Positions 1-64,000 of a DNA stretch of 64,000 nt are shown here, one piece after another (the first letter of the stretch is position 1; each line of letters starts with the position of its first letter). The translations under genes were made by a program, and so were the position numbers. The notes below the pieces were generated by a model. It saw only the letters and a list, made by a program, of their open reading frames with translations. It had not been told where the DNA came from and did not search any database. The stretch is from Cyanophora paradoxa CCMP329 (lineage: Eukaryota > Plantae > Glaucophyta), in contig QPMI01000255.1 of NCBI GenBank assembly GCA_004431415.1, positions 1 to 64,000 of the forward strand, given 5' to 3'.

Positions 1-77
1 ATAGGCCTACTGTGACAGCCGCGAGGGCGTCCGCGAGGCTTCGCCGTACTTAGTGCTCCGCAGGAGCACGGATCTTG

Positions 78-298: not shown

Positions 299-362
299 TC
301 AGGCGAAGCCTCTTTCAGGCGAAGCCTCTTTCAGGCGAAGCCTCTTTCAGGCGAAGCCTCTT
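299..362 (+). repeat. Four tandem copies of the 16-mer TCAGGCGAAGCCTCTT (5' terminal hairpin motif)
   Basis: Exact copies at 299, 315, 331, 347; AGGC-GAA-GCCT hairpin; single copy at 5262-5277. Confidence 0.95.
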
Positions 363-1990: not shown

Positions 1991-2303
1991 AGCTCTGTGC
2001 ATGCGCCTGGCCGCGAGAACCTCGCCCCTCCCGGGCCTCCTTCCCAACAATATTATAATTAATCTCTTCTCAATCTGCTCCACCCTTTAGTTCCTCAGTA
2101 AATTAATATTCCTCTAGCCGGCCAGCGCTAGCTGGACTGGCCGTCAGCCAGCCAGCTTCCAGCCAGCTGCAGAAAGCTGTTCGCGATCGGCCAGGCCGCT
2201 GGCCAGTCGCTGAGTGCCCTATATATATAGGCCTACTGTAACAGCGGCGAGGGCGTCCGCGAGGCTTCGCCGTACTTAGTGCTCCGCAGGAGCACGGATC
2301 TTG

Positions 2304-14610: not shown

Positions 14611-17600
14611 ATGGTGTTGGCCATGGCTGTTATCGCCGCGGGACAGTCTCCCACGCCAAGCCCGTCGGCCATACCGACCCTCAGCGCGACCAGCACGCCG
14701 CAGTACTTTGACGACGGAAGCGGCCCCGCCGACTACGCCCCAGACACCCACCTCTCCTGGTGCGAGGCGGGCTTGCGCGACGCTCGAGGCTCGCATCTCT
14801 AGCCTTAAGCTTAAGACCGTTGAGCCAATCAATGATGTGTAGCTGTCCGTCTCTAAGATCAAGTCCGAGTTCTTGCATACCCAGCTGCAGCATTACAAAT
14901 CACAGAGCTAGCTAACGCCGCCCCCTTCCTCTGTGCCGCAGGCTCATTGTCGCCCCCGAGGGCCAGGTGGTCGTCCTCGAGTTCACCGGCTTCGACACGG
15001 ATGATTTCGACTACGTCCAGGTGCAGATGGGAATCATTTATATTTAGAGCCCCGCGTTGCAACGTCCGCGCTTGAATCAACTTCGAATGCAGGGTTACGA
15101 TGGCAACAGCACATCTGCGCCGCAGCTCTTTATCGAATTAAGCGGGCAGCCTGCCATGCCCGTTTCCTACATTTCATCGGGCAACACAATTCTCGTCAGA
15201 TTCGACTCCGACAGTAGCAATCAACGTCAGGGGTTCAACGCCACGTATACGGCCGGTAAGACCTCTCAAAACCATTGCGCTGCGGCTGCTTCAACAATAT
15301 AAATCAATTTGATTTGATTTTGACATCGTCACACACGTCGTCTCGGCAGTCGTGCAATTCGAACTCAATGCGACGACGACACCGCAGCAGTTCGACGACG
15401 GCAGCGGTGCAGGCGAATATGCTCCAAACACACACGTAACCTGGTTCGCTGTGCTTTTGACGCATCGATCAGGCTGTCGCTAGCGCGCGCTGTAGGCGTT
15501 TGCGTACATGTATACAACTCGCATGCTGAATATAATCATAGACAACTCATCTAATCTTCCTCTGCTTTCTCGCAGGCTCGTCAGAGGCCCGGTGGACTAC
15601 TGGATTCTCCTCCAGTTCACCAGCTTCGACACAGAGTCGGGGCAGGACTACGTCCGGGTATGCCTCTCAATTTCTAGATCTTGCCTGAGCAACCTTGATC
15701 AGCGCTGGCGCTGTGCGGCCTTTGCTTCGCATCAACTGAGAGCCGACGTTCAATGCAGGGCTACGACGGGAGACACCTCACTTCACGGCAGCTCTTCGCC
15801 TTGAGCGGGCAGCCGAGCGTGCCCTTCGCCTTCGCCTCGTCCAGCAGGGCGATGCGCGTCACGTTCGACTCCGGACCCTCGGTCCAGATGCAGGGCTTTA
15901 ACGCATCGTACACCGCCGGTAGGCTCTTCCTGACTTCCCTTGCATTCGCGGCGCGCTTGCATCGCGCTCACCGGCTCCTGCAGTTCTGTACGGGGCCCAG
16001 GCGTCTTACAATTCGCTCAATGCGACGAGCATGCCGCAGTACTTCGATGACGGGAGCGGACCGTCCAGCTACGACCCATATGCCTCCCGCTCCTGGTGCG
16101 CGAGCGGGATCCCTCCGTACGAGTACTGGCGAGGCCTGCAGCAATGTTGATGCGAACAACTGACGCCGCCCTTTCCCCCGCCCCGGCTCAGGCTCATCAC
16201 CGCTCCCGAGGGTCACGTCGTCCGCATCCAGTTCTTGCATTTTGACACATATTCGGATTCCTTCAACACCGATTACGTAAGAGTGCGTTCTTGCTATTGT
16301 GATCGAGGATCCCAGATCAGCCGCGTGCTGCGCTCTCGAACGATAAACATTCTATACAGGGCTACGATGGGAGCAGCACGGCCGCAGCGCAACTTTTCCA
16401 GCTAAGCGGAAAGCCCGACTTGCTCTCCCTCACCATCAGCGCAACGACGGGAAACACGATGCTTGTCACGTTCGAACCTTCCTCGGATAGTTTCGGATTA
16501 CAAGGCTTTCTGGCTTCGTATTCTGCCGGTAGACACCCCGCCTCCCGCTCGTTTTGTGACTGCGCCAAATGTCATCTCGCAGTACCAATCGCGACAAGTC
16601 CTAGCGCATCAGCAAGCCCGAGCCCGTCGCCCACCCCGAGCCCGTTGCCCATCTCGGCCCTCAGCGCGACGAGCACGCCTCAGTACTTCGACGACGGAAG
16701 CGGCCCCGCCGACTACGCCTCAGACACCCACGTCTCCTGGTGCGTGACAATCTTGCGCGACGCTCGCATCTCATGATGATGGGTTAATGTTAACTATTTG
16801 CCCGTCTCGTACGCGTCCGCCACAGGCTCATCACGGCCCCCGAGGGCCAGAGTGTGCGCATCATCTTCGCCGAGTTCAGCACTGACTACTACGACTTTGT
16901 GCGGGTGCGCCTGGGGGCCCTGTACATGTGGCTAGGGCTGCCATGCGCGCTGCGCCTTCACATTCGGGCGCCATCGGGTCTGCGCTGCGGCTGATCGCGA
17001 GGCTCGCTGCAGGGCTTCGACGGTACCACCACCTCTGCGCCCGTGCTCTTCCAGTTGTACGGGCAGCCATCTTTGCCCCTCCGCTACCGCTCAACGGAAA
17101 ACGCGATGCTCGTCACGTTCGACTCCTCCGCAATCCCATATGGAAGTTTTTCGAGGCAGGGCTTCAACGCCTCGTACTTCGCAGGTAGCTATATATAGCT
17201 GTAGGATCTTTTCCCTGCACCCCGCTTCTGCGTTCATTTCTCACTATTGTTTCCGTAGAGTTTGCGAAATTCACCCTCACTGCAACGAGCACGCCTCAAT
17301 ACTTTGGCGACGGGAGCGGCCCCGCCAACTACGCCCCAGACACCCACCTCTCGTGGTGTGAGGCGGGCTTGCGCGAAGCTCGTATTTCTATGATATCAAT
17401 GCGTATACGTAACTGTCCTTCTCGTCTGCTACAGGCTCATCATTGCCCCGGAGGGCCACATCGTGCGCATCATGCTCACCCAGTTTGTCACTTCCTACCA
17501 AGACAACGTACGAGTGCGCCATGCTGCTCGGACTGCCACGCTGCCCTTACAGACGCCACCGTGCCTGCGCTCCGGCTGATCGTGAGGCCCGCTGCAGGGC

Positions 17601-38600: not shown

Positions 38601-41600
38601 TGGCGGCCGCGACGACCCTCGTCCACGCGCAACCGACGTCCATCGACCTCTCCGACGCCGAAACGGGCATCCCTCCCATCGTGTCAGTCACCTGCAGCGC
38701 GTTGCCGTGTCCGAGCTTCGAGCTGCAGTACTCCGTCGAGCGTGCGTCTCGATATTCGCAGCTACCACTATCTCTGCAGCGCGCATAACGGCGAGTCTGC
38801 AGCTTTCCCTGGATTTGCAACCGCCGAGTCTACGATTTCTGTTAGTGAGAACGGCAATCCAATCACTCTCCAGCCTCCCTCGATTAACGTCAACGACACC
38901 CGCGGCCGCTATCTCTCCGGACTCTACAAGCACTGGTGTGTCTCACTTTGTGCTCACGATTCATCCAACCGTGACGAGCGTCTCAGGATCATTCAATCGC
39001 CTCTGGGGACGCGTGTCTCGGCGCGCCTGCGGATCCGAACGAGCTTCGGGCGGGACAAGGTCAAGGTCTACGGCTCGAAGAGGATCGAGGGCGGGGCGCT
39101 GCTTCTGGAGACGAGCGGCGCCTTCGACGACGAAGTCGCCGTCGCCTCCGCCACGGACGTCATGTGCATCGTCCTCGAGGCGCGCGGCGAGGGCTTTTTC
39201 GCTGCCGACGTGCTCGCCGGTGCGGCAGACCCCGCCTGGCCCCATTGAAGATGGCCTTGGCGCCCCTCATCCCAGCGTCGTCTGTGCAGAGCGCGGCCGG
39301 GCATTGCAGTCAGACCGCGCCTCCTTCAACAACACGTTCTCGAGCTCCAATGCAACCTCCTGGTGCGCCGCCTTGTTGTGAAATAATTTCTTTTTCTCTC
39401 CTGCACCTTGATTTCATCATAACTCCGACTTCCTATGCCAATCCAGGCTTATTTCCGCCATGCCGCGCGAGCGGATCGAGCTCTCGACGACGACCAGCGC
39501 GGGCTGGACGCGCGTAAAGGTTGGAGCCGCTTGCGTCCACGCCGTGCAGCCACGCGGCCGGACACGGGGTGGTCGCGCGCGCAGGTGTTCGACGGGCCCA
39601 CGCGAGAGTTCCGCATGCTCTACGACGCCCTCTCCGAGAACAGCAGCCCCGAGACGAGCTCGGCCGTCAGCTCCGGCGGCCAGATGCTGATCGATTTCGA
39701 GACGGGAGGCGGCCAGGTCGCTGCTGCGTATAGAATGGGTGCGTCGCAGCACTTTTTCCATGGCTTGTCGCGATCGCGATATTGTTAGAGCAGCGGAAGA
39801 GGTCCATCACTTCACTGATCATGATGTGCTTATGTGCTTATTTTACGCAGTCTCTCTCATGGAAGAAGCTGTTGAGGCCATCGATGCCAGTGGTCGAGGG
39901 GTCCTCTCGTTCGAAATCTCCGCCGCCTTCTTCAACGCGAATGCATCGATGTCGCAAGCGTGGTGCGCCGCGTTGAGTCACTAATCAGCGATTCCACGGC
40001 GAGCAGACCGGCCCGCGGTTGCGAACGCAGGCTCCTGCAGTCTGCACCAGGAATGGTGTCGTTTTTGCATTTTGAAGAAGCGCATCTTGAAGCGAATGAA
40101 ACGCTCATGGTGCGCCTTGGGTCGATCACGAAATGTATTTTGAATTCAATCACGATGCTAATGAACTCCTATCTCTAGGTGTTCGATGACTCGTGGGCAA
40201 ATCCAACCAAGCAGCAACAAGTGATTCGCGGCGAAGTTTCGAGCGACTCTGTGTCGGTCCAAGGCTCCGGGAGCGACCTGTACGTCCTTTTCATAGGAAC
40301 TTCCAGCAGCTCTCTGGGCCTCAAATTCAAGGCCCTCTACCGCTCAGGTGAGTTGCACACTATTTCCCGAACTAAACATTGCAATTGTCCGTCGACGTCG
40401 CGCGGAAATTGAACTAAGTCGTTGGCAGTCGACCGGGCCGCGCTGGAGTCGGTGCAGACATTCGCCGTTGCTCTAGACAGCATCCCCTCGGGCCAGTATT
40501 TCTGGGTCGGTCAGGAGAGGCACTGCGACGGGCGAGAGCTCGCAATCAAGGATTGGTGAGCGCGACCATTGACGCCAGGACACGCCCCGCCGCGTGCATT
40601 TCGCGCCTTGTTCGTGAACTCTCTCGCCTCGTTAGGTCCTTCTCCGCCCGAGGCGGCCCGATAGTCCTTGAGCTCCGAGAGGTGTCTCTGTCGCCGGGGT
40701 CCTCGCTCAAGGTCACTCGAACCCGCGAGACGCCTGTCGCGCGTCTCGGACCGCGCGTGCACGTGACGCGCGGCATCTGCAGGTCTACGACACATCGAAC
40801 CCCCTGGATCCCGTGGAGCTGGGGCGCTTCGAGCTGCAGGGGGTCCAGCGGGGCAGCTCCGTTGCCGTCACGTCGCCCTCCTCGAGGCTGCGCGTGGCCC
40901 TGCAGTGCGGGGTGGGGTCGCGCACGGGCAACTTCACCGCCGCCGCCCGCTCGAGTGCGACCCAGTACTAGTCGCTCCGCAGCTCGGCGCACATTTACTG
41001 AAGCGACACATCGCGCGCGTGCGCGCAGCGTCCGGGGCCGCCATCATCCTTCACGCGGACCTCGCACGCATGGAGGCCGATTTCGGCGACGTCTCCCAAA
41101 TCGCGAGGCAGTACGTCGAGGACGACGAGTCGTGCATGGTCTCCGGTGCGCCCTGCCTCCGCATGCTCACGTGTGCCCGGACGCGTCGCGGTTCCGCGCT
41201 TTGACGCGCCAAGCAGCGCCGCGTCGGTCGATGCTCGGCGCTGCGGGGCTCCACGGATTCGACGTGAAGGCCGCCGTGCCGGGCGCGTTCCTCGTCGTCC
41301 CGGTGCGCCTCGCCTTCTGGGCCACCTCGCGGGACGCGTCCGATGGGGGGCCGTGCACGTGCACGTGCAGCTGGGCGGGCTGCTGCAGGCGCGCGACCTG
41401 GGAGCGCCCTTCTACTTCAAGGCCTCCCTCTCCCTGACGACGCCGGCCGAGAGCGCCGCCCAGGCCCTCTCCACCGTCAGCGTCAGCCTCGGCAACGTCC
41501 CCCGCTCCCTCTGCGAGGAGGGCGCCCAGGCCTCCCTCCAGCAGCTCCGCTCCTTCTTCTCCACCGACACCGGCCACCTCACGGTCCGCCCCGGGCCGGC

Positions 41601-44600
41601 CCGCCGCCCGCTCGCGCCGACGGGCCTGGGCGGGCGGCAGGGGGTCTCCGTCGCTCTGCGGCTCGACGGCAAAGCCCCTGCCGCCCCGCTGGCCCTCAGC
41701 CTGCGCCCCGCAGTGCTGGCCTTCGACGGGCGGCGGAACGGGGACAGCTTCTTCCCGGCGGTCATCGAGGCGCCCCCGAACCTCACCGACGCGACCTCAC
41801 GCACGGGTCACTGGCGCCTGCACGTCTCGTACCTGCCCCGGCTGGCGGCCTCTGGCGACGCCTCAAAAGCGGCCGCCGAGCTCTCGTTCTACACCGAGCG
41901 CAACCAGCAGTCGACCGCCCTCCTGAGCCGGTGAGGCGCTCGAGCCCTTCGAGCTTTGATTCCGCGCGGCCGGTGCTCACTGTTGCTGCCTGCACCTGCG
42001 ACAGGCGGGTGGTGCAGCACAACTTCGCAACCGTCCACGCGAACCTCGCACTCATCATCGGCGCACGCTCCCTCGTGTGCAGTTCCCCGCCACCTCGCGG
42101 CGTCTACTTATGTGCGCACAGTCTCCCGTGCGAGTGGAAGAGATCGCCGTCCTTCGCGCTGGAACCATCATTGCGGTCACTCGCAACTCGGGCCCCTTGT
42201 CAGGCGGCAATGTCGTCACCATTTCAGGGGAATTCCTCGGCGTGGAGGCCGAGCCTTCCGATGTGTACCGGGTCGACCTCTGTGGCGTTCCTGTCGATGC
42301 GATCGTTCGTCCCGCCCCGCCCGCCGTCGCTTGCGATTGCAGGCCAGTGACAACGGGGGCGGGCGGCGCAGCTGCACAGCTCGAGCTCGCAGGTCGTCGT
42401 GCGAGTCGGGGACGCGCGGCGGGCAGCGCTCTCGCAGCTGACGGGGGAGGTCATCGTCTACTCGCGGCTCCTCTTCAGAACCACCAGCATGCCGGAGGCG
42501 TACACGTACCTGCCCCGTGCGCGACGCTTTCGTTCCGATTCCCCAGAGCGCACCGGGCTGCATGCGTGACCCTCACTGCAGCTGGGTCAATCGATTCCGT
42601 GGATCCCGCCTCGGGGCCGTACCACGGCGGAAACCGAGGTCCTTCACATTCAGATGGAAATGAATCCCTGAACCCTCTGACACGTACATTGACGTCGCCC
42701 GCAGTTACAATCAAAGGCAGGTTTTTCGCGGAGAACTGGGATTCCATCTCGGCCGTCACATTCGGCGACTTCGTCGCCGAAATCCTCTATGAATTCGCGC
42801 CCAGCGATCGCCTGGTGGTCGTGCGGGCCCCGCCGGCGAATGCGACGTTTGACGCGACCGTCCCGGTCTCCGTCCGCTCCGCCTCGCGCGGCTCCACCGA
42901 CGTCCTTGCGTGCACCAGCTGCCTCTACAGATACAATCCAGGTGCAGAGGGCGCCGACCTGATGGCGGGACGGGCCCCCTAACGCCGCGCGCGCAGCGTG
43001 CCGAGTGACGGGGGCGGCGCCCAGCAACGGGCGGCTCTCGGGGGGCACCTCCGTGACGCTCCAGGGAGAGTTCTACGCCGGCACCGCCGCCTCGGACGCC
43101 GACCTGACCCTCGCCGGCGTCCCCGTCGCCAGCCTCGCCGGCCTCAACTTCGAGAGCCCGAGCACTCCCGTCAGCTCCCTCGTCGTCGTCACGCGACCCG
43201 CCCCCAACCCGCAGGACGGGAGCATCAACGCCACCTTCGCGAGCCACGGCGTCTGCCTCAAGGGGCCCGGCGCCGTCTGGACCTACAACCCGGAGCCCGT
43301 CCTCGCGTCCATCACGCCGGACCACGGGTCGCGGCACGAGGAGACGGCACGGGCTGTGATCAGGGGCGAGAACCTGGCGGCGGGCGCCGGCGACCTGGAG
43401 CTGGTGCGGCTGGTCTGTGAGGACGGCTCGGTGGTCGCCGGGGCCCCGCTCTCCGTGAACCTCACCCACGTGGAGGTCGCCTTCCCGCCACTGGCGAGCC
43501 GTGCGCAGACCTCGCGCAGCGCCACCGACTGCTCGCTGGAGATGCGCTCCACCAGCCGCGGCCGCGGCGAGCTGCCGCGCGCGTTCCGCTACCACGCCTC
43601 GCCCGGCCTCTACGGCTCGCGGCTGCTGGAGGCGGGGGCGGAGGGGAGGGCGACCACCGTCCAGCTCTCCCTCGTCGACGTCGACCTCGACACCGCCATC
43701 ATCACCGTCTGCGGCCTCCCCTGCGTTTTCTCCGACCGAGGCCTCCCCATCGACCTGCGGAACGGGTCGGTACAAGTCACCGCCGACGTGTTGGGGTGCG
43801 CGTGTGCATGCGCCTGATTTCCGAGCTTGTTTTGCGTTGGGATGACGCTCGGGGTCGCAGCCTTCCCTCGGGTCTGGCGCTGAATTTCGCCTCCACCTTC
43901 GTTGCAATCCAGAGCCAGGCCGTGCCCTTCTGCTCCGTCCGCTTCATCTCCCCTTCCTCCGCAGCTCTGGACGGCGGCGCTCCCACGCAGCTCACCATCG
44001 CGTACGCGTCCAGCCTTGCTAGCGCGACGGCAATTGTGTCGCGCGTCTTTCTCGCGGGCGTCGAGGCGACCGTGAAGCCCCACGACCCCGGCGCCTCGGC
44101 CATCGGGGTGCTGGTCGGGAAATCGGATCGCACGCTCTCCTCTGACGCGTCCGGTCCCGTCCTTGCTATGCTGGGGAGCGGCCAGTGGTGCTCCCGCGCG
44201 CCCTTCAACGCCGATTTCGCGTACCGCGGGAAGGGCTCCCTGCTCCGCATCCTCCCCATCCACGGTCCCAACGCGGGCGGCGTGCGCGCGCGTCGCGCTT
44301 GCTGATTGCGAGATCTAGCTATATATAGAGCGAGCTCAAGAATATCCAGCTTGATTTGTTTCTGCCTGCGCAGTTCCCTGTGACGATCGTTGGATGTGAC
44401 ATGGCCGAAGGCGCCAGCGACGTCGAATCTGTTCAGTTCCAGTGCAAGGGCGAGGCTGCAGCTGGCGGGGCGGCGCCCCCACCGTACAACGTCACTTTCG
44501 GCTCTTCCGACTACACCTGGCGGGATGTCTGGACGGCCGAGGAGACGGCCGCAGTCGCATCTGTCAACGCGACTTGCGGGACGGCTGTTCGGAAAGTTCT

Positions 44601-47600
44601 CGCAATCAAGGCTGTCCCAACCGCCACCCTCTCTGCTTTCACGGAATGCAGCGTGGAAGTGAAGTCCTACGTGCGCGGCCGCATTGTCTCAACGGAACCG
44701 TTTAAGTATCACGCAAGTGCGCGGATGCCGCTGCAGGCCGTTGACGCAAATTCGTCCGTTGACGCAAATTCCTCCGCAGTCGCCCGACTGACACAAGAGC
44801 CCAGTCTTATGAAGGGATACCTCGACGGGGGGACGATTATCACCCTCACCGGGACTGACTTGATCTTAACCGCGGGGACTCAGGCGACTGCACTTGTGGC
44901 CGGCATCTCAGCGAAGATCGTTTTGCGCACTGTTCTGAGCGAGGTGCGCGGAGAAATGCAGGTGGTCCTGAACACAAGCCGGTCCGTTTGCGATATCAAT
45001 TGCACTAGCGCTGCGAGCTCCTTCCTTCACGTTCTTGCGCTCGTTGATCGGCGACTTAGGGTTGATGAAGCTACGCTGGACCTGTCTTCTAGCGCAAATG
45101 GAGTAACGGGCCCAATCGTCCTTTCGTCCGGAGGCAGATCCTTCTCCAGTTCGGGCAACTTCACGTATCGGGTGCCCTGCGTATCCGTACGTCTCCTTCG
45201 ATTCGGGACGCTCACGGCGTGACGCCAGGGGATCTACCGGGCGCGGCCGTCCCTCATGGCGCTGGACAGCAAGGACCGGCAGCTGACGGTCTCGGGGATC
45301 GACCTCCTCTCCGACGGCCTCACCAGCGACGCCCGCCGCCCCCGCGTCTGGGTCGCCGGCCTCGAGGTCCCCGTCCAGATCGACGACAGCCTCGGCCTCG
45401 AGCGCGCCGCCCTCCGCGCCACCCTCCCCAACGCGACCGCCCTCTACAGCGCCGGCATCGACACCGGCCCCGCCGAGATTGTCGTGCAGCTCGCCCGCGA
45501 CGGCGCTCAGCTCACGACACGGCGCCAGCGAGCCCTCCAGTTCGTGGGCATCAAGAGTGTCACGCCGGACGTCGGCTCGACGGAGGGCGGCGAGACGCTC
45601 ACCGTCACCGGCAACTACATCACACCCTCCGCAGACCCCGCAAGCTACGTCGTGAGCCTCGTCAGCGCCGACGGGAGCGCGACGCTACCATTGACCGTCG
45701 CGGAAGTGCGCACCAACTCCTCGAGCATTGTCGTCCTCGTCCCCCGCGCCTCGGAGACGGCCTCGGTGCGGGTCCCCTCCGGACTCTACGACCTTGCCAT
45801 CTCCGCCCGGACGGCGGCCGGCGAGGCCGCCTCGGACTTCAGCAGGCCATCCCTCTTCACGATGTTCGGCATCGACCGCGTCGCCCCCGAGTGGGGCCCC
45901 CTCGATGGCGGCACGCCCCTGACCCTCACCGGGCGCTGGCCCGCAGGCCCTCTCACCTGCTCCGTCAAGGGCGTCCCGGCTGCCCTGGACGCGGTGGCCT
46001 CCGGCGTTCCCCTCGCCTCGGGGACCGTCGTTGCAGCGGCGGCGGGAGCGGTCGTCATCAGAACAGGGAGCGCCCGGGCGGCGAATGTGGCGACCGGATA
46101 CGGGACGGTCAGCTGCCGTGCAGCTGCGGGAACAATGAGCGTATCCTCCCACTTCACATCGTTCATGTACACCGGAGTGCATGACATTCAGCCGAAGTCC
46201 GTCCCCCTCTCGGATGTAAAAACGGTGCGCTGGCCCTGGAATTCAATTCTATCGAGTTCCAGTCAATTTTCCAAGCAAACACTGGAGCTCACTACGAATT
46301 CGTCGCAGGTCACACTTTTCGGAGCGCGGCTCTTCTCATACGACCAGACGGAGGCCCCGCGCGTGACAGTGACCATGGACGGAGATCCGCAGCGCTCTTT
46401 GCAGCTGGGATCCGGTGGAACTTCAAAAGCCCTGCTCTTGTCCAATACATCCGCCAGCGGTGTCCATGTGAGTCGCTGCTGCCGATCGCGAGTCCTTTGA
46501 TAGGAAGCGGCCTGTGATTGATTTACCACAGGAACTTTATGTGACGATTCCGGACACGTCTTCCCTCGGAACTGGCTTCCTCACTTTCACAATAGACAGC
46601 GCGCTGTTTGGTGTGACGCACGACAGCCCGGCAATTGAAGCTGAAGTCTGGGGAATAGATCGAGTCTCACCCTCGGAAGGTGCGTTAAAATTCGCTGCTC
46701 GATATCGATGTCACGATCGTGCACCAAAACACATGCACAAATGCATCCGCTTTCAGGCTCAGTGCGCGGCGGCGACCGCGTGACCCTCGTTGGGAGAAAC
46801 ATGCTCCTTGGCTCCGTGGCCGCTCAGCTCCACTCGTTCTTGATCGGGGGCCTGCCAGCGACACTCGCATCCGACATACAGATAGCTGCCAGTGGCGTCC
46901 AGCGCATTGTGGTCGTCACTGCGTCATCGTGCGACAACCTCCAGTCGGACAGATCGTCGGGTGGCTTGGTGGCCGTGCAAATCGCTTCCGGCGCGTCCGG
47001 GTCGCGGCTGAAGCGGGACCGAATGTTCACCTACTTCGGGCGCTGCCCGTCAGCGAGCAGCACGGACGGGCAGGAACCCGACGCAGGGTTAACGGAGTAC
47101 GATGATGGGCACACCTTCGTGTTCACATTGGCCCTCCCGTTCGAGAAGGCGCTTGCCGACCGGACGCAGTACATTGAGCTGCTGCTGCAGCGGGTAGCGC
47201 AGGCGCTCGGGGTGGCGCGGGGCGACGTCCGCGTCTCGCTGCTGGTAAAGGGGTCCACGAAGTTCCTCGTGCAGGCGACCAGCGCCGCCGCGCGCGCAAG
47301 CATCGACGCCGCCTTCCAGGTGCGGCCCTCTCTTCGCCTTCGACGTTTCCAAGTGCCCACTCTCCTCGCGCTCGTAGGAGCTGGCCTCGAGCGCGTCTGG
47401 CAGCCTCGCTCCTGCCATGAACATCGAAGTCGACGGCTACGGGCTGACTGCGGCGCCGGTTGCCGTCAGCGGCACAGCCGTGTTGCCGACGCGCTGGGCG
47501 TGCGGCGAAAATTACGCCGCCGGCGACGGCTGCGACTGCGGCTGCGGCGTCTTCGATCCCGACTGCGCCTCAGAGCCGGGTGTCTCCAATAATGACATCG

Positions 47601-50600
47601 TCTGCTCGGCGGGTGGCTCGCGGTGCGCGAATGCGTCTCCGAATTCGACCTGCCGGTCGGCACCGGTATTAATATTGATGTCGCATCTTGGCGCAGGTAT
47701 TCAGCCTATTCCCGAAGCAACGGCGCGGAGCTCGCGGGGCCCTGCACGTACTGCCCGATTGTGCCTCCGGATGCTCGGTCCCGCACGCAGGCCGCAGCCG
47801 ACAGCCGAGCGCACCGATACGTTTGGTACTCGCCACTGCGCTGCTCTTCGGAGACCGACAGTTGCTACGGGGGGGACGACATGGTCAACGACGGCTCCTT
47901 CCTGCGGCCCTTCGAGAGCGTCGCGCGGGCGCTCGAGGGGCTCGCGGCCAACGCGACGGTCCACCTTCTCCCCGGCAGGCACAGGTGGACGGCGTGCGAC
48001 GAGGGCTTCTGGGCGCACGTCAGCGACGGTGGGCGCGCCCTCGACCTCGAGATCGCCTCCCTCAGCGGCGCCTCCTTCACAATCGTGGAGGTCGAGCGCG
48101 GCTGCGGCTTCCTTAGCGTCGCCTTCTCTCACCCTGACAGCCGCCTGAGAATCTCCGGCTTGCGCTTCTCGGGTGGAGGAGGCGCTCCCCTCCTGCAACT
48201 CTCCCTGGCGGACGGGGCGCGAGCCACAATTGACGGATCTGTCTTCGACGGGTCCTCCTTCAGAGCCGAGCCGGCATCCATGAGTGCACAAGCCGTCATA
48301 ACCCTCGACGGCGGTGCACTCTTCAACGTGTCCAACACCGTGTTCAGAAGCTTCACTGCGGCAGCCACAAGCAGCGTAGTTGCCGTCACCCGTGTCAGGA
48401 CGCTGCTGCTTGACGGCATAACGTTCATCAAAAACGCTCTGCGGGGCCCAGGTGTGGCTCTGTCGGCGTCAACCGTCGGCAGCCTCGTTATTCGCAGGAG
48501 CACCTTTGCCGACAATACGGCAAACTCGTGCGTGCAACCCGACCCGTTGCATCTATCGCGTCTGACTCGAAAAACACGCAAAGAACTTCGGGAGGGGCGA
48601 TTCTCGCAAGCGTTGTCTCGGCAGAGGTCGCCGACAGCAGTTTTATGCGAAACGTGGCCGGAGCTGGCACCTTGTCGGAAGAAGCTGCAGCTGGGCAATC
48701 GCTCCTGGAAGGCGGCGCAGCGCTTGCTTTGATTCTTCGGGCGCGGGAAGCAAAGGTGCTGCGTTATCCGTATTTTATTCAAAGAGCCTGCCCGAGCTTT
48801 CACTCGCAGGCGACGCTGCGGAATTGCTCTTTCTCAGATAACCGCGCCTCGAGCGAGATGGTGGCCGCGCCCGCAGCAGGAGGCGCCGTCGGCGTCCGCG
48901 ACACAACTAACTCCGTCCCGTCTACAAGCACGGTACTCATTGAATCTTGCACTTTCTCGAACAACAAGGTTCGCCAAAGCCCGCCCATGGATATCGATCG
49001 TCAACGATTGCGCTTGCGATGTATGATATCGGTCCCCATGAAACAGGCTCCGCGGATCGGTGGCGCCATGGCAATCGCTGATGTCGGAAACGCAACTGTC
49101 GTCGACTCTGTATTTAACGGAAACAGCGGCGAATGGTGCCCCTGCGGAGACGGCGCGTCTGGCGGTGGCTCCTCGAGATTCGAGTTTGGAGGCGGGGCTG
49201 TGTACGTCGGTGGACGCGCATCCGGCAGGAGGCTCGCCGTCATCAACTCCATCTTCGCAAACAATTCGGACACGGGCTGCAGCGCCCTGGCTGCAGGCAG
49301 CGAGCAGTTTGGCGGTGGCGCCATTCTCGCCAAGCAGCTCGCCGCGCTCGTCGTTCGGGGAACGGCTTTCGCGGCCAATCGCGCGAGCGGTGCAGGAGGG
49401 GCGATCCTCCTGGCCGGCTCCTCGTCCGACGGGGGCGACCCGCTCACCGTCGACATCGAGTGGAGCCGATTCGAAAACTGCACCTCAGCGCAGAGCGGGG
49501 GGGCCCTGCTCGTCCCGGACTACGCCAGCCAGCTCTCGCTCGTTGCGTCGTCCTTCGAGCGCTGCTCGAGCCTCGTGGAAGGCGGAGCCGTCTCCTCGAA
49601 GGCCACCACGACATCGGTGGACGCGTGCACGTTCCTCCGCTGCGGTGCGGAGGGGCGCACGCTTGGGGCGTCTCTTTACATCGAGCACCGCTCCTCGTCG
49701 AGGCTGCGGGCGAGCACTTTCATTGGGGGGAGGGGCCGCCAAGGCGGTGCGATCTACTTTGCGGCCGGCGACCTTGCGGCGGCGGTGCCTCTTGCCGCCG
49801 AGGGGGCGTCTGGGACGTGCAGCCCAAGCTCGCAGCCGGCGGCGGCGAGCTCCGCGCGCGAGTCTTCAGCGGGCGCTGTGACCCTCGAGGACCTGACGTT
49901 GACGGACTCTAGAACGACGGACTACGGCGGGGCCCTTGTCCTCGAAGGGCTGCTCCAGCTGCAGGCCAGCAACGTGCGAATATCTCATGCAGCGAGCGGG
50001 ACGAAGGGCGGGGCGGTGTACGTCGACTCGGAGAGCACGTCCAACGATGTCCTCTTCCGGGACTCGAGCTTCAGCGAGTGCTCGGCCTTCACCGGCGGCT
50101 GCGTCTTCGTCGCCAACTCCGAGGCGCTCCGCTTCGAGAACGTGACCCTCGCCGGCGGCCAGTCGCAGGAGAACGGGGGCGGCCTCGCCATGGACGACGG
50201 GTCGGCCACCTGCCACCGCTGCCTCTTCCGGGACTGCCAGGCGGAGAGCGGGGGCGCCGTGTACGTCACCGGATTCGCCTCCTTCGAGATGGCCAACTCC
50301 ACGGCCCTCTCGTCCACCGCTCGTCAGGACGGTGCGCAGCCGCCGCCGTCGGTTCGCTAACTTGCAATAGCACCTCTGACCGCCTCGTCGCGCAGGGGGT
50401 GCGATCGTGGCAAACGGGCAAGCGACGCTGCGGTTGACGAAGTCGCTCATTTCCGGGGCCCAGGCGGTCAGCGGACGGGGCGGCGGCCTCTTCTGCACCA
50501 AGCAGTCGCGCTGCTTGCTCCAGAACTCTTTAGTGGCCGAATCTGTGGCGAAGAGCGGCGGCTGCGTGGCAGTGCATGCGACCGGCTCGATCTCGTTCGT

Positions 50601-53600
50601 GCACGGCCTGATGTCGGGGTGCCGCTCGGAGCTCCAGGGCGGGTGCGTCAACGCGCAGGGCGAGCCGCTCTCGGGGCACACGCACCTTCGCCTCGAGGGC
50701 TCCAACGTGACGGGCTGCGTGGCTGGGATCGCCGGCGGCGGCGTCGCGTCCAGCGAGCGCGCCGTCGTTCGCGTCGCACAGTGCTCTTTTGTAGAGAACG
50801 TCGCCGGCCAGGCCGCTCTGGCCGGCAGCACCGGCGGAGGAGAAACCCAGGTCGGCGACGCGGGGGCCCTGCATGCCGCTGGGCAGTCTCTCGTCGCGGT
50901 CTCTTCGACGGTGTTCGTTGGCAATACCGCGCGGCGACGCGGCGGCGCTCTCGCGACCGATGCCTACGCCACAGTATCCGTTAACGGATCGACTTTCAAG
51001 TACAACCGAGCAGGTACTTTTAATATAAATATTTATGAGAGTGGAGAGACCAGCGTTGTCGCACGACTCGGCAAACATCGGCCAAGCTGAGCTTGCGCAG
51101 GGGATGGAGGCGTTCTGCACTCGTCGGGCGCCTTCGTCGAGCTTCGGCTCTGCACGGGGGCGCACAACTTCGCATCGCGGGGCGGGGCCGTGTTCGCGTC
51201 CAGGGGGAACCTCACCCTGGACTCGACGACCCTGGAGGAGAACGTCGCGGGCCAGCACGGCGGCGGCCTCTTCGTGGAGCCACAGGCGTGCGACGCCCTG
51301 ACGCTGCGCGACGCCGCCCTGCTGCGCAACAACGCGCACGAGGGCGGCGGCGGCGTCTTCTACAGCGCGCGCGACCTCTCCACCTGCGGCCTCTTCTCGC
51401 CCGAGGCGTGCAGGCAGTACTCCGAGAACACGGCCGGCTACGGCGCGGCGTGCGCCGCGCCGCCTCGGCGCATCGTCCCGACGCTCTTGACGGAGCCGAT
51501 CGGGGTGGCGAGCGCCAAGCCCCTCCTGATACAGGTGATGATGGAGGATGCGTACGGGTGCGCAATTGCACCCCCTCCCCCGTCGGCGCCCCATATATAT
51601 GCGCGCTCTGATGCGCGCCCCGCCAGCCAAACCGTCACAGATTCCGGGCCCCTAGCCCAGGTGTCCGCTGTTTCCGGTAGCTTGAGCTTCGTGTCGGGTG
51701 CGCGAGCTGCACTTCCGTCCCAAAATTGTATTGATCGCGGTCGCGGCTGAGCACGGCGAGCGCAGGGACGACGGTCAACGCGACGTCCAAGGGCGTGGCG
51801 CTGCTCTCTGACGTACGGCTTACAGACATGCCGGGGGGCGCCTACAACGTCTCTGTCTCCGTGGCCGACCGGCAGCTCGAGCCGGTCCTCCTCAGCGTCT
51901 TCCTCCGCAAGTGCATTCCGGGCGAGATCCATGACAGGGTCGCCCGTATCTGCTCCGAATGGTACGTATACGTATACGGAATTGCAGTAACTGATCTACT
52001 GTTTAAACTCGCTGAATTGTTCGTCGATCTGCAGCGGCCCGAACTTCTTCAGCCTGAATCCCGACGACGCGTCCTGCAACAGATGTGTTGAGGGCGCGGT
52101 CTGCGAGGGAGGGGCGGTCATCTACGCCAAACCGTGCGCTGTTCGATTTCATCAACATCGCTGCTCGCTGCCCGCACGGCTTCTGACACGCGCTGGCAGT
52201 GGCTGGTTCCAGAGCGAGTACGACCCCTCCATGTTCATCGAGTGCCCGAACGGCGAAGAGAGTTGCCTGGGCGGAAAGCCGCAGGAGCTCTTGCAGCAAA
52301 CACCGACGCTAGCAACTGAGTGCGGGAGCGACGCATCGGGGGCGGCAAACAGCTCTTCAAACTCGACGGCGTGCATACGACGGCGCAGGCTCTCCGGGGC
52401 GACCGCTGTGGCCGGCGGCGCTCAGCTCGAGGTCCCAGCGCCGGCGTTCCGGACGGCGTGCCAGTCGGGCTACCGCGGACCGCTCTGCGGCTCGTGCGGG
52501 ACGGGCTTCGGGAGGGCCGGCGAGTTCGCCTGCTCCAAGTGCCAGTCTGCCGCCATGTCCGCCGTCATCGGCATCTCCGCTGCCATCGCCTTCCTCTTCT
52601 TCGCCGGGTCAGTCCTTCCCGCGGCATTTGTCGTGCACCTTGGGAACAATTTCGCGCACGCACGCGTTTTTGGGACTTTCCGGCAAATTTAGGACACTTT
52701 CTCAAAACTCTGGGGGACATTGTCAACCGCATTTGCGTGCCTAGAAATTATGATATTAATCTCGGGTGCATTCGAGCGATTTTGCGCTGTTTAAGGGCAC
52801 TTTCGCGCAAGTCTGAGGCATTTCGCGCTAATTCGGGACACTTTCGCGCACATATCGTGCACTTTTGCACTTCAGTGCAAGCATAAAGCGCTTTCACAGG
52901 ATTCACGGCTGCCGGGGCGCCACTGACTGGCGGGGCAGGTACATCACGTGGACGACGATCCTGGACGCGAGCAACAAGGACGAGGAGGAGAAGCGAGGCC
53001 TCTTCCTGCAGATCCTCCTGGAGTTCCTCCAGCTGACGACCCTCACGAAGCGGCTCTCCGTCCGCTGGCCATCCGTCCTCAACGGCCTCTTCGAGTCGGA
53101 AGAGGCGATGGTGCGCCCACCACAGCGTTGACGCCGACCATGCGCATCTCTCGAACGCAAACGAGCGCCTTCGAATTCGATCCGGCCGTGACCGTCGGGG
53201 GCGTGCAGGTGAGCCCGACAGAGCAGGTCGTGAACCTGGACTGCCTCCTGGGGCTCAGCCGCAACGACCAGTCCCGCCCCATCCGCACCATCTACATCAA
53301 ACTCTTGTCCGCAGCAGCCCTCGCTTGCATGCCACGCTGCCCCGCGCGCGTGACAGCTAACCGGCGCTTGTAACTGCAGGTTCTACCTCCTGCTCCCGCT
53401 CGCTTCCTTCCGTGCGTTTCGCGAGAATTCGCAGCTTTGTCGACTCTCGGGTGCTCATAGAACTCCGTCTCTCGCAGTGATCCCGGTGTTGCTTGCGATC
53501 CTCGTGCCCCTTATGCACATCATGGCACAGCACGCGCGGCGGTGGGTGACGGCCCTGCTCCATCTCCTGCGGCTGAAGCGCGCGGCGAGCAACGATCACC

Positions 53601-54518
53601 GCAAGCTGGCGCTGCGCGGGACCCACTCGTCTTCGGCGATGATGCTGGACAAGCTCTCCGGGATGAAGATCTACAGCGCGCAGTGGTGGGCCGGCACCAA
53701 GCACATCTACGTCGTCGGCTGCATCGTCCTCATCTTCTTCTTCCAGGTGCACTAGTACTGACGGAATATGACTTCGGCGCATCGAGTCTATTCTAATTTC
53801 GAGTCCGTTCACCGCTGACGCTTCGATGCGTCCGCAACGCAGCCGATGGTCATCGCACGCCTCACCTCCTTCTTTGGTGCTCACGCAACCCGAAGCGGCC
53901 CCTGGCCACGCACATGGCGCATGCTCACGTGCGCTCACGCACAGGCTGCGTGAACATCGGCGGGGGCGTCTGGGTGTTAGCACAGGACTCGAGCATCGAC
54001 TGCTCCTCCGCCGAGTACCGCACCTGGATCTTCGGCGTCAACGTGCCCCTCCTCATGTGCGCCCCGTCTGCCGCCTCTGAAATCCCTCCGGGCGCTGCCC
54101 GCTGATCGCGAGCGCTGCGGGGCAGCTTCTACGGGCTGGGCATCCCGGCCGGGTTCGCCCTCTTCCTCTACCGGTACCGGGAGCGCATCCGGAACGACAG
54201 CGACGGCGACTTCCGCCTCTTCTTCTCCTTCCTCTACCGCGTCCGCCGCGCCCGCCCTCGAACCCCGCCGCAATGATTTCAGAGCGCGCGCCTCACGCGC
54301 CCCGCCCGCGAAACAGGGCTACGATCGGGAGCACTTCTACTTTGCGTTCGTTCCCCCCCCCCCCCCCCCCCCCCCACTTCCGCCTCTTCTTCTCCTTCCT
54401 CTACCGCGTCCGCCGCGCCCGCCCTCGAACCCCGCCGCAATGATTTCAGAGCGCGCGCCTCACGCGCCCCGCCCGCGAAACAGGGCTACGATCGGGAGCA
54501 CTTCTACTTTGCGTTCGT

Positions 54519-54567
<49 letters not shown>

Positions 54568-56448
54568 ACACACACCCTTCCTCCCCTCCTCCCGCCCGCC
54601 CCGCCCCGCCCCGCCCTTGCGTTGACTTTTAACGTCTGTACAGCTTCGTCTCTATGGTTCAAAAGACGGCCCTCGCCGTCTGCATGGCCGTTTTCAGCGA
54701 TCGGTGCGCCGGGCTCGATCGGCTGCGTTTGGGCAGGCCGACGTTGACGGCGCGCGCAGACCCCTGATTCAGGCCCTAATGGGCGCTTTCATTATCTTCA
54801 TAGGCAAGTGCTAGCGGAGCGCCCGCCGGCCTTATACGCAGCGCGCGCTGAGCGGCGGCTTCCGCGCACTGCGGCATGCGCAGGCATCGTGCTCCACATT
54901 CAGTTGAAGCCGCGCTCAAGCCGGCGGATGTCCGCGATCGAGGTGGCGTGCCAGATCGGCGTCCTCACCACCATCTGGCTGTGCGTCGACCTCCGCCCAC
55001 CCGTTTCGTCGTGACGCAAGCGGGCACCGCAGGGGTATCTTCCTCTTCCCGGACGCGGAGCTGAACGAGGACCAGAAGAGCCTGATCGCCGCCGTCGGGC
55101 TCATCTTCAACGTCTCCCTCGTCGCCATCCTGTGTCTCCTCTACCTCTTCGGCGAGGAGCGGGTCCGCCCGCTCCGCTTCCCCGCCCCATGGGGCGAAGG
55201 GTCGCCTGATCTTGAAGAGCTCCGTCTGGGCCGCAGGTGTTCGACAAGATGCGGACAGTCATGCCCTGGATGCGGAATATCCGCGCCCGCACCGTCATGG
55301 TGCGCCGCGCCCCGAAGGACGCCGACGCCGACGCGGATGGTGCGGCGGAGGGCTCGGAGGTCCCGCGGGGGCCCTCGCCGCGGCCGGGCAGCCTCGTGCA
55401 CGTGACGAGCCTGGACGGGGCGGAGCCCGAGCTCGAGCCGCCGCTCTCGGAGCCCGTGTACCGCGAGCTCGCGCCCGGCCCCGGCGACGACGTCGACCGT
55501 GAGAGCGCGAGCGCGGCGGGAGCCGGCCAGCGGGCACGCAGTCGCGGGAGGGACTACGGCGTCGATTCCGACGAGGAGCGCAAAGAGCGTGGCCTGGTCC
55601 TCGCGAAGGGGCCGATGGCGAGCCCGAGCCTGACGGGGACGGCGGGGCCGAGCCCGCTCCTCGCGGGCCTCCGGGGGCCCCCGCTGGAGGGCGGCGAGCG
55701 GGCAGCGGAGGAGCGGGCGCCCTCGGCCAGCGCCCGGCCCCCGAGCGTCACCGCGCCCGACCTCTTCCAGCTGGACGCCCGCCCGCGCCCGGACGGCGAG
55801 CTCGATCGCGAGCCCGGGGCCTCTGACGCCGCCCCCGAACCCGGCCATGAAAGCGGCAGCCCGTCCCTTGTCCGCGACGTCAGCCCCGAGCCGCCGCTTG
55901 TCAGCGTGGTCGACCCCGGGCAGCTGCGCAGGCAACGACGATCGGCGAGCGCGCCCATGATAATGGTCGAGCCAATGCTGCCGAACCAGCCGATCTCAAC
56001 CCGGCTCGACTTCGAGATGCTCCGCGTGGACGGGATGCTCCGCGTGGCGGGGGGCAACCCCGTCACCAGCGTCCATGCCGAATTCGACGGCGACCCGTCA
56101 TCGCTAGATCCGTTGATGCGGGTGGTGTCGCCGTCGCTGTCGGGGCGCAGGATCATCCTCCCGCCCCTGCAGACGGCGTCAGCGATCGCCCCTGTCGACG
56201 ATCCTTTCGGAGGGCGCTTCACGAGCAGCCCTCGGCCCCTCGGCTCAGACTTGGACGTGCTTCTCAGGCCGAGCTCGCGTGCGGCCGCTGGCGCCACCCA
56301 GCGCTCGCGGCCGCCGTCGACGTCGGCGTCGCCTGCCCCCGACCACGACGCCTCCGCCCCTGGCGTCGGCCGCGGTGGGGACGTCGACGGGGCGGCGCAG
56401 CGCGAGGATGGCGATCCTACCGTCAATTGCAAAATCGATGTTGTGTAA
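14611..56448 (+). CDS. Giant multi-exon cell-surface receptor/adhesin: CUB x28, PPC-like x2, WD40, CUB-like x~10, IPT/TIG x~13, SEA-like, beta-helix, Cys-rich, multi-TM, Pro-rich tail
   Basis: Unbroken chain of short + strand exons with GT..AG introns; phases matched at the junctions I checked; hydrophobic leader [21 protein letters not shown]; many N-x-S/T sequons; terminal exon 55237-56448 ends in TAA. Start codon uncertain (14371, 14555 or 14611). Single-gene status is inferred because no intergenic gap or second leader is visible. Confidence 0.7.
14640..32510 (+). CDS. Array of 28 cysteine-free CUB domains, three exons each (part of the giant gene)
   Basis: Repeated [27 protein letters not shown] | LIxAPEGQVVxLxFxxFDTExxxDYVR | [53 protein letters not shown] fits the CUB pattern (Y..W.I.AP.G..I.L.F..F..E..DY...DG..S..L.V.F.SD..GF.A.Y). 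Counted 28 GYDG-type exons from ~15092 to ~32339. Confidence 0.92.
22911..24240 (+). repeat. Near-identical 646-bp tandem duplication of a whole CUB module including introns (modules 14 and 15)
   Basis: Identical translations at 23292/23938 and 23279/23925 (offset 646); introns match apart from a few substitutions. Confidence 0.92.
32581..32935 (+). CDS. Long (SP/TP)n stalk; shorter PS linkers near 16610, 22840, 26240, 29930
   Basis: [25 protein letters not shown]...PTRTPSPS in ORF 32581..33162. Confidence 0.88.
32936..34260 (+). CDS. Two PPC-like beta-sandwich domains
   Basis: Twice: GxT...EAWFxF...xSTCSPxTxFxTxxWxL...C...YxIxV...GxFxLT, which resembles bacterial pre-peptidase C-terminal-like modules. 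Confidence 0.55.
34260..35210 (+). CDS. WD40 beta-propeller (about 7 blades) in one long exon
   Basis: [91 protein letters not shown]. Confidence 0.9.
35315..40970 (+). CDS. About 10 diverged CUB-like domains
   Basis: Recurrent ...W | (xx)xPxG..hxhxF.. | VFDG/VFEG/IFEG ... GFxA pattern, mostly with the intron inside the Trp codon, e.g. [35 protein letters not shown]. Confidence 0.65.
42120..47040 (+). CDS. About 13 IPT/TIG domains
   Basis: [83 protein letters not shown]|[12 protein letters not shown], often ending FxY/YxY. Confidence 0.85.
47100..47620 (+). CDS. SEA-like domain followed by a small Cys-rich motif
   Basis: [30 protein letters not shown]; [24 protein letters not shown]. Confidence 0.5.
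47860..51460 (+). CDS. Right-handed beta-helix with Pmp-like GGA(I/L/V) and FxxN repeats
   Basis: Cap [21 protein letters not shown], then many units such as [57 protein letters not shown]. Confidence 0.88.
51905..55152 (+). CDS. Cys-rich juxtamembrane region and ~9-TM membrane domain (type seen in protist beta-helix multi-TM receptors)
   Basis: [28 protein letters not shown]; [21 protein letters not shown]; [13 protein letters not shown]; NLDCLL; LAQDSSIDC; YGLGIPAGF; FSFLYRGY..FYF..VQK; IQLKP. Confidence 0.8.
54209..54575 (+). repeat. 167-bp direct duplication ending in poly(C), followed by (CA)n
   Basis: ACTTCCGCCTCTTC...TTTGCGTTCGTT-Cn starts at 54209 and again at 54376. Confidence 0.9.
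55237..56448 (+). CDS. Terminal exon: ~400-aa Pro/Ser/acidic disordered cytoplasmic tail
   Basis: ORF 55237..56448 after a CGCAG acceptor; ends CKIDVV-TAA; AT-richer 3' flank follows. Confidence 0.8.
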   Translation: MFDKMRTVMPWMRNIRARTVMVRRAPKDADADADGAAEGSEVPRGPSPRPGSLVHVTSLDGAEPELEPPLSEPVYRELAPGPGDDVDRESASAAGAGQRARSRGRDYGVDSDEERKERGLVLAKGPMASPSLTGTAGPSPLLAGLRGPPLEGGERAAEERAPSASARPPSVTAPDLFQLDARPRPDGELDREPGASDAAPEPGHESGSPSLVRDVSPEPPLVSVVDPGQLRRQRRSASAPMIMVEPMLPNQPISTRLDFEMLRVDGMLRVAGGNPVTSVHAEFDGDPSSLDPLMRVVSPSLSGRRIILPPLQTASAIAPVDDPFGGRFTSSPRPLGSDLDVLLRPSSRAAAGATQRSRPPSTSASPAPDHDASAPGVGRGGDVDGAAQREDGDPTVNCKIDVV

Positions 56449-63800: not shown

Positions 63801-64000
63801 CGGTGTCGGCGACCCAGAGGTCGGCGAGCCAAGGCCCGCGGGGGTCGCCACCCAGCCCCGACGAGCAGCAGCGCGCCGCGCGAGGCGGCCAGCGAGTGGC
63901 CCTCGCGCGGGCACGGCCCGCGAGGGCCCCCGCGCAGCAGGCGGGAGCGCCAGGCGGCCGTGTCGAGCACCCAGGTGTCGGCGGTGAGGACGTTGACGAG
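57882..64000 (-). CDS. 3' part of a Kelch-repeat plus multi-filamin (about 11-12 repeats) protein gene; many apparent frameshifts
   Basis: Filamin motifs across frames: FVVRARDEMGEEVPSGGD, GEYLLHVAVNGAHVAGSPFELAVLPG, VELADAFGN, FTAVDAHGNLRRAGGD, DGTLVCLFRPSAPGDYQIRV. Kelch-like PCPREGHSLAA, PRYGHAAA and DTWVLDT at 63670-64000. 5' end is outside the window; exact 3' end uncertain. Confidence 0.75.

Follow-up and report, generated by a model that had tools for sequence, protein, structure and literature searches.

How far can one gene be followed along contig QPMI01000255.1 of the glaucophyte Cyanophora paradoxa CCMP329 (GenBank assembly GCA_004431415.1), and what protein would it encode? We analyzed the first 64,000 nucleotides (nt) of the forward strand, hereafter the window, where a first-pass annotation had proposed a + strand exon chain of about 42 kb encoding a giant mosaic receptor, with an array of CUB domains, a body of IPT and beta-helix repeats, and a base crossing the membrane several times. 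The chain was rebuilt in frame over ~42 kb, from an ATG at 14611 to the stop previously given, at 56448. The composite gene model comprises 159 exons, with a coding sequence of 27,405 nt, 9,134 amino acids (aa), and zero internal stops. Its 158 introns measure 51–294 nt (median 78.5), 294 nt being the largest gap between exons; 150 donors are GT and eight GC, and all acceptors are AG. The observation of a single giant mosaic chain is thus confirmed at the sequence level, and it is probable, on the same grounds, that one gene encodes the whole protein of ~9,100 residues. Its features are as follows.

14611..14676, + strand: putative start codon, short hydrophobic signal-like segment, and first Pro/Ser linker (inspection of the frame ahead of module 1)
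14611..32510, + strand: 28 Cys-free CUB modules, 84 exons, 3,441 aa (exon hidden Markov models, splice phases, Pfam CUB)
32582..32930, + strand: long Pro/Ser/Thr stalk, ~117 aa, 83% P+S+T (sequence, composition)
32931..34260, + strand: two related 4-Cys modules of ~125–150 aa each (sequence reading, curated exons)
34210..35256, + strand: exon encoding the final strand of the second Cys module, then a WD40 propeller at ~34290–35250 (Pfam)
35314..40954, + strand: nine diverged CUB-like modules, a to i (relaxed exon-chain run, translations)
41029..42040, + strand: predicted ectodomain sequence, ~260 aa (exon-chain model only; no Pfam match)
42048..46989, + strand: IPT/TIG array, nine units detected, space for ~13 (Pfam TIG, locally iterated profile)
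47060..47440, + strand: alpha/beta segment, SEA-like label unconfirmed (language-model lead)
47495..47560, + strand: Cys motif, LNR-like by eye only (sequence; not called by Pfam)
47797..51400, + strand: right-handed beta-helix, ~1,000 aa (Pfam, motif count, tblastn of family members)
51400..52550, + strand: Ig-like segment and Cys-rich neck, C.RC.EGA.C.GG ... CSKC (weak Pfam DUF7631, library search)
52555..55162, + strand: membrane region, 14 short exons, eight hydrophobic segments and one amphipathic helix (hand curation, family profile)
54209..54542, + strand: perfect 167-bp tandem duplication (Tandem Repeats Finder, 100% identity)
55237..56448, + strand: terminal exon, 403-aa low-complexity charged tail and stop (exon-chain model, translation; no Pfam match)

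The regular CUB array

When the open stretches of the + strand were compared all against all, each 100-nt bin between 14.6 and 32.6 kb had ~25–60 partners, and almost no bin downstream had any. Three local exon profiles (E1, E2, and E3), seeded from one module, recovered exactly 28 ordered E1-E2-E3 triplets between 14677 and 32512. E1 ends at TG/GTGCG (the slash marks the splice site) in phase 2 and splits a Trp codon, E2 ends at CGG/GTGCG in phase 0, and E3 at G/GTAGG in phase 1; array acceptors read (C/T)AG. After four hand corrections, the 84 exons were joined into 10,324 nt without a stop, across 83 GT-AG introns of 52–244 nt. Pro/Ser linkers precede modules 1, 4, 14, 19, and 25; together with the stretch at 32582–32930, they account for the Pro/Ser stalks reported earlier. 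Intron read-through was rejected in the array, as each same-frame E1-E2 or E2-E3 read-through contains a stop. GC content at third codon positions (GC3) alone did not separate the reading frames of the array. The ten longest open reading frames (ORFs) of 14–30 kb had no Pfam match, because these ORFs are mostly in the wrong frame, the true exons being 26–65 codons long.

Throughout this work, the queries made to Pfam, the HMMER library, the atlas, and the structure tools were single exons or ORFs, and the spliced sequence was compared only with local profiles. All ten E3 exons submitted matched positions 62–110 of the 110 positions of Pfam CUB (PF00431), with E values from 4e-6 to 0.04, and three of them exceeded the 21.4-bit cut-off. 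A profile built from 27 E3 exons matched 27 solved chains, all of them from CUB proteins; cubilin ranked best (E 3.6e-12), followed by neuropilin-2, PCPE-1, ADGRG6, MASP-1/2/3, TSG-6, and C1r. The corresponding 27-exon E2 profile matched the N-terminal CUB half, that is, the strands W.I.AP.G..I.L.F..FDLE, with PCPE-1 at E 1.7e-7; 13 of its 14 matches were CUB proteins, among them also MAp19/MASP-2, MASP-1/3, C1r, and ADGRG6. As the E3 profile matches the C-terminal half and the E2 profile the N-terminal half, both halves of the module are CUB, and the CUB identity of the array modules is firm from these sequence comparisons.

The modules depart from the usual pattern of the domain. The four cysteines that usually form two disulfides in a CUB are missing, since there is no Cys in the 3,441-aa array, and Ser stands at two of the usual Cys positions (..SW.. 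and LSG). Some known CUBs lack one Cys pair; the absence of both is unusual. Glu/Asp/Asp calcium-site residues are known from the CUBs of C1s, MASP, and cubilin. In the array, the calcium-site Glu is common, the Glu of FDTE aligning with that of FDLE, and the first Asp (DYVR) is nearly invariant. In alignment to cubilin, the third Asp (F-x-S/T-D) occurs only in modules 1, 14, 15, and 26. By reading of the sequence, the Glu/Asp/Asp pattern is found only in modules 14 and 15, and perhaps in module 1.

Identity between modules ranges from 43% to 90% (median 55%). The ratio of nonsynonymous to synonymous substitution rates (dN/dS) has a median of 0.34 over 253 module pairs, and exons are clearly more conserved than introns in most paralogous module pairs. 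Each whole module begins and ends in phase 1. With phase-1 introns on both flanks, the skipping or duplication of a module preserves the reading frame, and such phase 1-1 modules are a known exon-shuffling pattern of animal extracellular modules. Modules 14 and 15 (23298–24105) are 98–100% identical over E2, E3, and both introns, which suggests that they were duplicated or converted very recently, or that the assembly is collapsed or expanded here.

Continuity of the chain beyond the array

Downstream of the array, the model was built with an exon-chain finder, a simple Viterbi procedure that scores codon usage, applies short splice matrices, and penalizes introns. It misses short exons, and weak places were curated by hand. 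On the CUB array it returned 81 of the 84 exons exactly, which is a calibration and not an independent test because the array was its training set. Run from the donor of module 28, the finder ends at the stop at 56448. This donor is in phase 1, as are the other E3 donors, and the next exon is Pro/Ser, like the internal linkers.

In-frame splice sites might nevertheless have led to the wrong chaining of two or more genes, such as one for a secreted CUB-array protein and another for an IPT or beta-helix membrane protein of the usual family size, 1,400–2,850 aa. The relatives of the membrane end described below are far shorter than the present model, no RNA supports the joints, and the finder always bridges gaps. 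The inter-exon gaps, however, are all at most 294 nt, and the joints themselves bear on the question. At the first of them, the stalk at 32582–32930 shares one exon, unbroken, with the start of the first 4-Cys module. The two Cys modules carry the motifs AWF.F, STCS, W.L, YYI.V, and G.F.L.V on curated exons at 33178–33308, 33369–33476, 33529–33766, 33852–33970, and 34022–34129; Pfam found no match to their exon pieces, and a PPC-like resemblance was noted by eye only.

The second joint is spanned by the ORF 34188–35543, which runs uninterrupted for 452 codons. It takes in the final strand of the second Cys module, comparable to GTFGLTLQL of the first, then a WD40 propeller, and lastly the beginning of a CUB-like module. 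WD40 (PF00400), already named in the first-pass annotation, matches this ORF at E 2.4e-32 over four repeat stretches, and many whole-propeller families match it with E values down to 1.7e-35. Because the ORF holds all three parts in order, the propeller lies within the chain and is not a nested gene; two domain types are thus physically linked, which argues against separate genes.

Beyond the propeller, the nine modules a to i mostly follow the E1/E2/E3 plan, with a Trp opening the second exon; five of the nine (b, c, d, h, and i) keep the full 2-0-1 phases. Four of them matched the array profile with E values between 5e-9 and 1e-4, and a further three did so marginally. Iterated array exon profiles did not recruit the diverged modules, and Pfam gave no CUB match to the ORFs tested in 35.3–41 kb, hence the name CUB-like. 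With the 28 regular modules, they bring the total to 37, close to the "about 38" CUB or CUB-like domains previously estimated. Since modules of the array exon plan fill 35.3–41 kb, this periodic middle stretch supports the continuity of one chain and weighs against the joining of unrelated genes.

The IPT/TIG array follows. Pfam TIG (PF01833) matched at four to five places, two units scoring 38.5 and 38.8 bits for a cut-off of 20.9 and three being weaker, and a locally iterated profile detected nine units between 42048 and 46989, with gaps that fit about four more. Of the ~13 IPT domains originally counted, nine were therefore recovered, two of them above the Pfam cut-off, and the remaining four or so correspond to room in the sequence only. 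The SEA-like domain was not confirmed: the segment rests on a language-model lead (0.81), has no Pfam match, and the single-sequence AlphaFold2 model of exon 46759–47319 is too poor for a fold search (predicted local distance difference test, pLDDT, 42).

The LNR-like motif at 47495–47560 deserves particular attention, as one family member starts with LNR domains and a separate membrane protein could begin here. Neither a signal-like segment nor an in-frame stop precedes the motif. The exon that carries it, which has no signal-like start ahead of its Cys motif, is joined to the preceding exon (47319/47378) by a canonical 58-nt intron with a GTGCGG donor, a TAG acceptor, and phase 0. Taking the joints together, we consider the chaining of several genes quite unlikely, and retain one gene as the probable reading.

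The eight GC donors of the model (at 33477, 38529, 39497, 42061, 47723, 48741, 52656, and 54804; GCGCGG, GCACGC, GCAAGT, and similar) all lie outside the CUB array, where 83 of 83 donors are GT. Those at 52656 and 54804 are backed by the family profile described below, and several others fall at weak points of the model.

The read evidence bears on a different doubt, namely that the gene is silent or decaying, or partly an assembly artefact of a repeat array. Read contigs were compared over 50501–56500 only. Three runs of presumed RNA type gave just 18–21-nt chance pieces there and no RNA contig, and only three 2012 runs, evidently DNA, contain the stretch. One of these DNA runs contains 98% of the sampled words of 40–50 kb and covers 50501–56500 except ~54318–54629, where the contig of run X1 breaks. 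The perfect 167-bp duplication at 54209–54542 flanks poly-C (23 + 34 C) and (CA)n tracts and copies a 29-nt exon with upstream intron sequence, the protein being the same with either copy. The short-read DNA contigs are interrupted at exactly this place, and the duplication may have arisen in assembly. This break and the near-identity of modules 14 and 15, introns included, would fit an artefact, as the lack of RNA contigs on the gene would fit silence. Against both stand the 84 array exons, which were placed by homology and not by avoidance of stops and still give 3,441 codons without stop or frameshift, the dN/dS of 0.34, the conserved family residues retained in the membrane base, and the DNA run that contains nearly all sampled words. 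A silent, decaying, or artefactual gene is accordingly very unlikely in our judgment.

The membrane base and the flanks of the gene

The last third of the protein opens with the beta-helix, for which Pfam Beta_helix scored 59.3 bits and Chlam_PMP was weak; it contains 24 GG[AGC]x motifs, that is, PMP-type repeats. A homologue search with the 648-aa beta-helix ORF found none at E 1e-5 among proteins of 356–1,134 aa, a range uninformative for longer relatives. The Cys-rich neck that follows is the best-matched stretch of the library search, and homologues have DUF7630 at this place. Both the beta-helix and the Cys-rich part of the first-pass annotation are thus borne out. Near the neck, three introns are stop-free and in frame (51558–51626, 52134–52199, and 52320–52388), and the ORFs 51091–51747 and 51991–52689 run straight through them; their retention would add residues and would not truncate the protein.

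A full-library HMMER search with the ORF 51991–52689 returned 43 matches with E < 1e-3, centered on the CSKC motif and the first membrane helix. The Cys motif of the family, C..GY.G.LC..C...YGR....C.KC, is present directly ahead of this helix. Homologues, of 1,400–2,850 aa, come from Caulerpa lentillifera (the gene-model run g3760-g3785), Ostreobium quekettii, Euplotes crassus, and metagenomes; they bear Beta_helix and Chlam_PMP, and one, P0011, has four N-terminal LNR domains. From 13 homologue membrane regions we built a family profile of 444 positions, with which the exon pieces of the membrane region are colinear. The profile revealed a hole of 15 residues, which led to the exon 54760–54803 (GCAAGT donor), and confirmed the exon 54884–54980. 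The locally joined membrane region scored 204.8 bits over profile positions 2–390 of 444. Within the 8–9-helix module, Cys, Trp, Pro, and Glu positions are invariant across phyla, and the conserved family residues are retained here. By sequence, the last third, from the beta-helix onward, belongs to an uncharacterized eukaryotic family whose conserved Cys-knot and multi-pass module is combined with interchangeable ectodomains, in line with the earlier remark that proteins combining beta-helix, Cys-rich, and multi-transmembrane parts occur in protists. AT content is higher in the 283-nt intron that follows the first membrane helix (52656–52938), where a CACTTTCGCGCA-like motif recurs several times; a small repeat may have been inserted.

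Of the ~9 transmembrane segments and cytoplasmic tail initially proposed, eight hydrophobic segments and a 403-aa tail were found, the ninth segment being an amphipathic helix only. Nine spans would make the tail cytoplasmic.

What the membrane module does can be approached through its relatives. Pfam gave no match to the exon pieces of the membrane region. Among the 13 homologues, PF06011 ("TRP", cut-off 28.5 bits) scored 34.2 bits with P0011, 32.2 with P0016, and 22.1 with P0030, and the ten others had no match. An AlphaFold model of the P0016 membrane region is of good confidence (pLDDT 80.9; predicted template-modeling score, pTM, 0.81). Compared with predicted eukaryotic clusters, it aligned with template-modeling (TM) scores of 0.70–0.89 to clusters from Chlorophyta, Cnidaria, Ciliophora, Porifera, and Haptophyta, in which the membrane module is paired with Ephrin_rec_like, LRR, Chlam_PMP, or TIR ectodomains; the homologue model was also aligned by an atlas cluster labeled TRP (TM 0.55/0.75). 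As many eukaryotic clusters share the fold with varied ectodomains, the base may be regarded as a widespread cassette whose role is uncharacterized. The PF06011 matches point indirectly to the fungal Flc/Pkd2 proteins as its only studied relatives. In Pkd2, a signal peptide and an extracellular domain precede the central membrane domain, and the protein ends in a cytoplasmic tail (PMC6727746); reconstituted Pkd2 becomes calcium-permeable upon membrane stretch (PMC9727806).

The window as a whole has a GC content of 57–83%, except for 48% at 10–12 kb, and is eukaryotic DNA with short introns. Upstream of the gene, positions 1–10000 carry nested tandem repeats of 149, 297, and 327 bp and a strong C-over-G skew, and the ORF 9650–10732 had no Pfam match. 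Downstream, 58000–64000 has ~83% GC and very long ORFs on both strands; a − strand ORF (58965–61925) matched the Filamin/ABP280 repeat at 28.8 bits (Pfam cut-off 26.9), which may indicate a gene with Ig-like repeats on that strand.

Possible role and comparison with known systems

We infer that the protein is located at the cell surface with its ectodomain outside, and the most likely role is that of a very long adhesion or contact sensor. The ectodomain would project hundreds of nanometers from the cell, and the CUB loops would bind surfaces or macromolecules multivalently. A pull or binding event at the ectodomain might then be transmitted to the membrane module, which would act as a mechanosensitive element, probably cation-conducting. 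Such a protein would be an algal counterpart of fibrocystin/polycystin-type sensors in logic, not in ancestry. We somewhat favor the combined reading, in which one giant surface protein couples multivalent capture by CUB domains to a mechanosensitive membrane element. The channel-coupled sensor mechanism, taken by itself, is more tentative and rather less likely than not. The suggestion of a sensor or adhesin with a channel-like domain, made at the outset, has gained something concrete if indirect in the PF06011 matches of some homologues, the function itself remaining a matter of inference. Still more specific, and unlikely in all its parts at once, is an independently assembled glaucophyte contact or mechanoreceptor, in which 37 CUB domains with diversified loops, forming a rod free of disulfides, would capture ligands or surfaces and, by way of an IPT/beta-helix lever, gate an Flc/Pkd2-type cation-conducting module.

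Several observations weigh against the combined reading. The start codon at 14611 is putative, the open frame extending back to 14200 and including a further in-frame Met near 14350, and three stretches of the model (38.1–38.6, 41–42.7, and 48.5–48.8 kb) rest on the exon-chain finder, which always yields some chain. A WD40 propeller is unusual in an ectodomain. Seventeen runs from the same species, guessed to be RNA, contain next to no sampled words of 40001–50000. With only eight membrane spans the tail would be extracellular, unless the membrane is crossed by the amphipathic helix as well. The link to PF06011 is indirect, with two of 13 homologues above the cut-off and no Pfam match to the window exons alone. 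The P0016 membrane model matches no solved channel, all Foldseek E values being at least 0.08 and the best VIA Z, 8.0, being at noise level for helical bundles.

The last of these points would also suit a less active role: the same giant protein could be a passive structural adhesin or a fiber of the surface coat, anchored and nothing more by its multi-pass base. Structural surface glycoproteins typically have Pro/Ser stalks and long rods of tandem domains, the function of the family is uncharacterized, its link to PF06011 is weak, and the membrane fold lacks a solved-channel counterpart. Yet a conserved 8–9-helix module with residues invariant across phyla exceeds what an anchor needs, the 403-aa tail suggests intracellular partners, and stretch makes the related Pkd2 of fungi calcium-conducting (PMC9727806). 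The passive adhesin has in our view a minor but real share of the probability, and the mechanosensitive surface protein stays ahead of it.

CUB, IPT, and beta-helix receptor architectures have mostly been treated as animal inventions, and here they are found in an alga, with a Cys-free CUB array built from phase-1-flanked modules outside animals. If the reading as a glaucophyte mechanoreceptor holds, long CUB arrays of phase-1-flanked modules are not an animal invention. The gene would also give the widespread Cys-knot and multi-pass module a very large, analyzable ectodomain, and the weak tie of that module to Flc/Pkd2 putative mechanosensitive channels offers a testable idea for the whole family. 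Even if unexpressed, the gene is a clear case of giant-gene building by tandem module duplication.

This combination of domains was not found in any other protein. In the literature, no paper linked Cyanophora and CUB, and the sole match for Cyanophora and fibrocystin was unrelated by its title. The closest relatives are members of the beta-helix/PMP, DUF7630, and multi-pass family, such as CAD7699384.1 of O. quekettii and CAI2372838.1 of E. crassus, with which the protein shares the beta-helix, the neck, and a colinear membrane region; the C. lentillifera models g3760-g3785 are likewise true homologues of the last third. In contrast, four full-length members that were scanned have no CUB, WD40, or TIG, whereas the present protein is three to six times longer than family members and carries, ahead of the shared part, 37 CUB modules, a WD40 propeller, and an IPT array.

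Fission-yeast Pkd2 and budding-yeast Flc1-3 have a like layout of signal peptide, extracellular domain, membrane domain of several helices, and tail. Their ectodomain, unlike that of the present protein, is a small ML-like lipid-binding domain, and the resemblance is seen only through homologues, whose membrane fold differs from that of canonical TRP channels. Polycystin-1 and the CUB-bearing adhesion G protein-coupled receptors (ADGRG6) share this logic, in that a long adhesive ectodomain is set on a signaling base with several membrane spans; GAIN/GPS, REJ, PLAT, and seven- or eleven-transmembrane signatures were not found in the pieces scanned.

The likenesses to cubilin and fibrocystin that had been drawn from the start are fair as analogies, resting on the long CUB array in one case and on the succession of IPT and beta-helix in the other. 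Cubilin, with 27 CUB domains, is likewise a very long tandem array; to our knowledge, the present array is among the longest. The CUBs of cubilin retain both their disulfides and their calcium sites; EGF repeats are present as well, and the protein is not known to span the membrane, whereas the array described here has no Cys and shows the calcium-site pattern in few modules. In fibrocystin (PKHD1) and PKHD1L1, too, the giant ectodomain carries an IPT/TIG array and, after it, parallel beta-helix repeats near the membrane. Fibrocystin, however, bears G8 and PA14 domains and crosses the membrane a single time before a short tail; Pfam found no G8 on the ORFs covering 47.4–50.4 kb, and in the present protein the base is multi-pass (8–9 hydrophobic segments) and the beta-helix of PMP type. 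By sequence, the protein is a member of neither the cubilin nor the fibrocystin family, but its layout resembles both.

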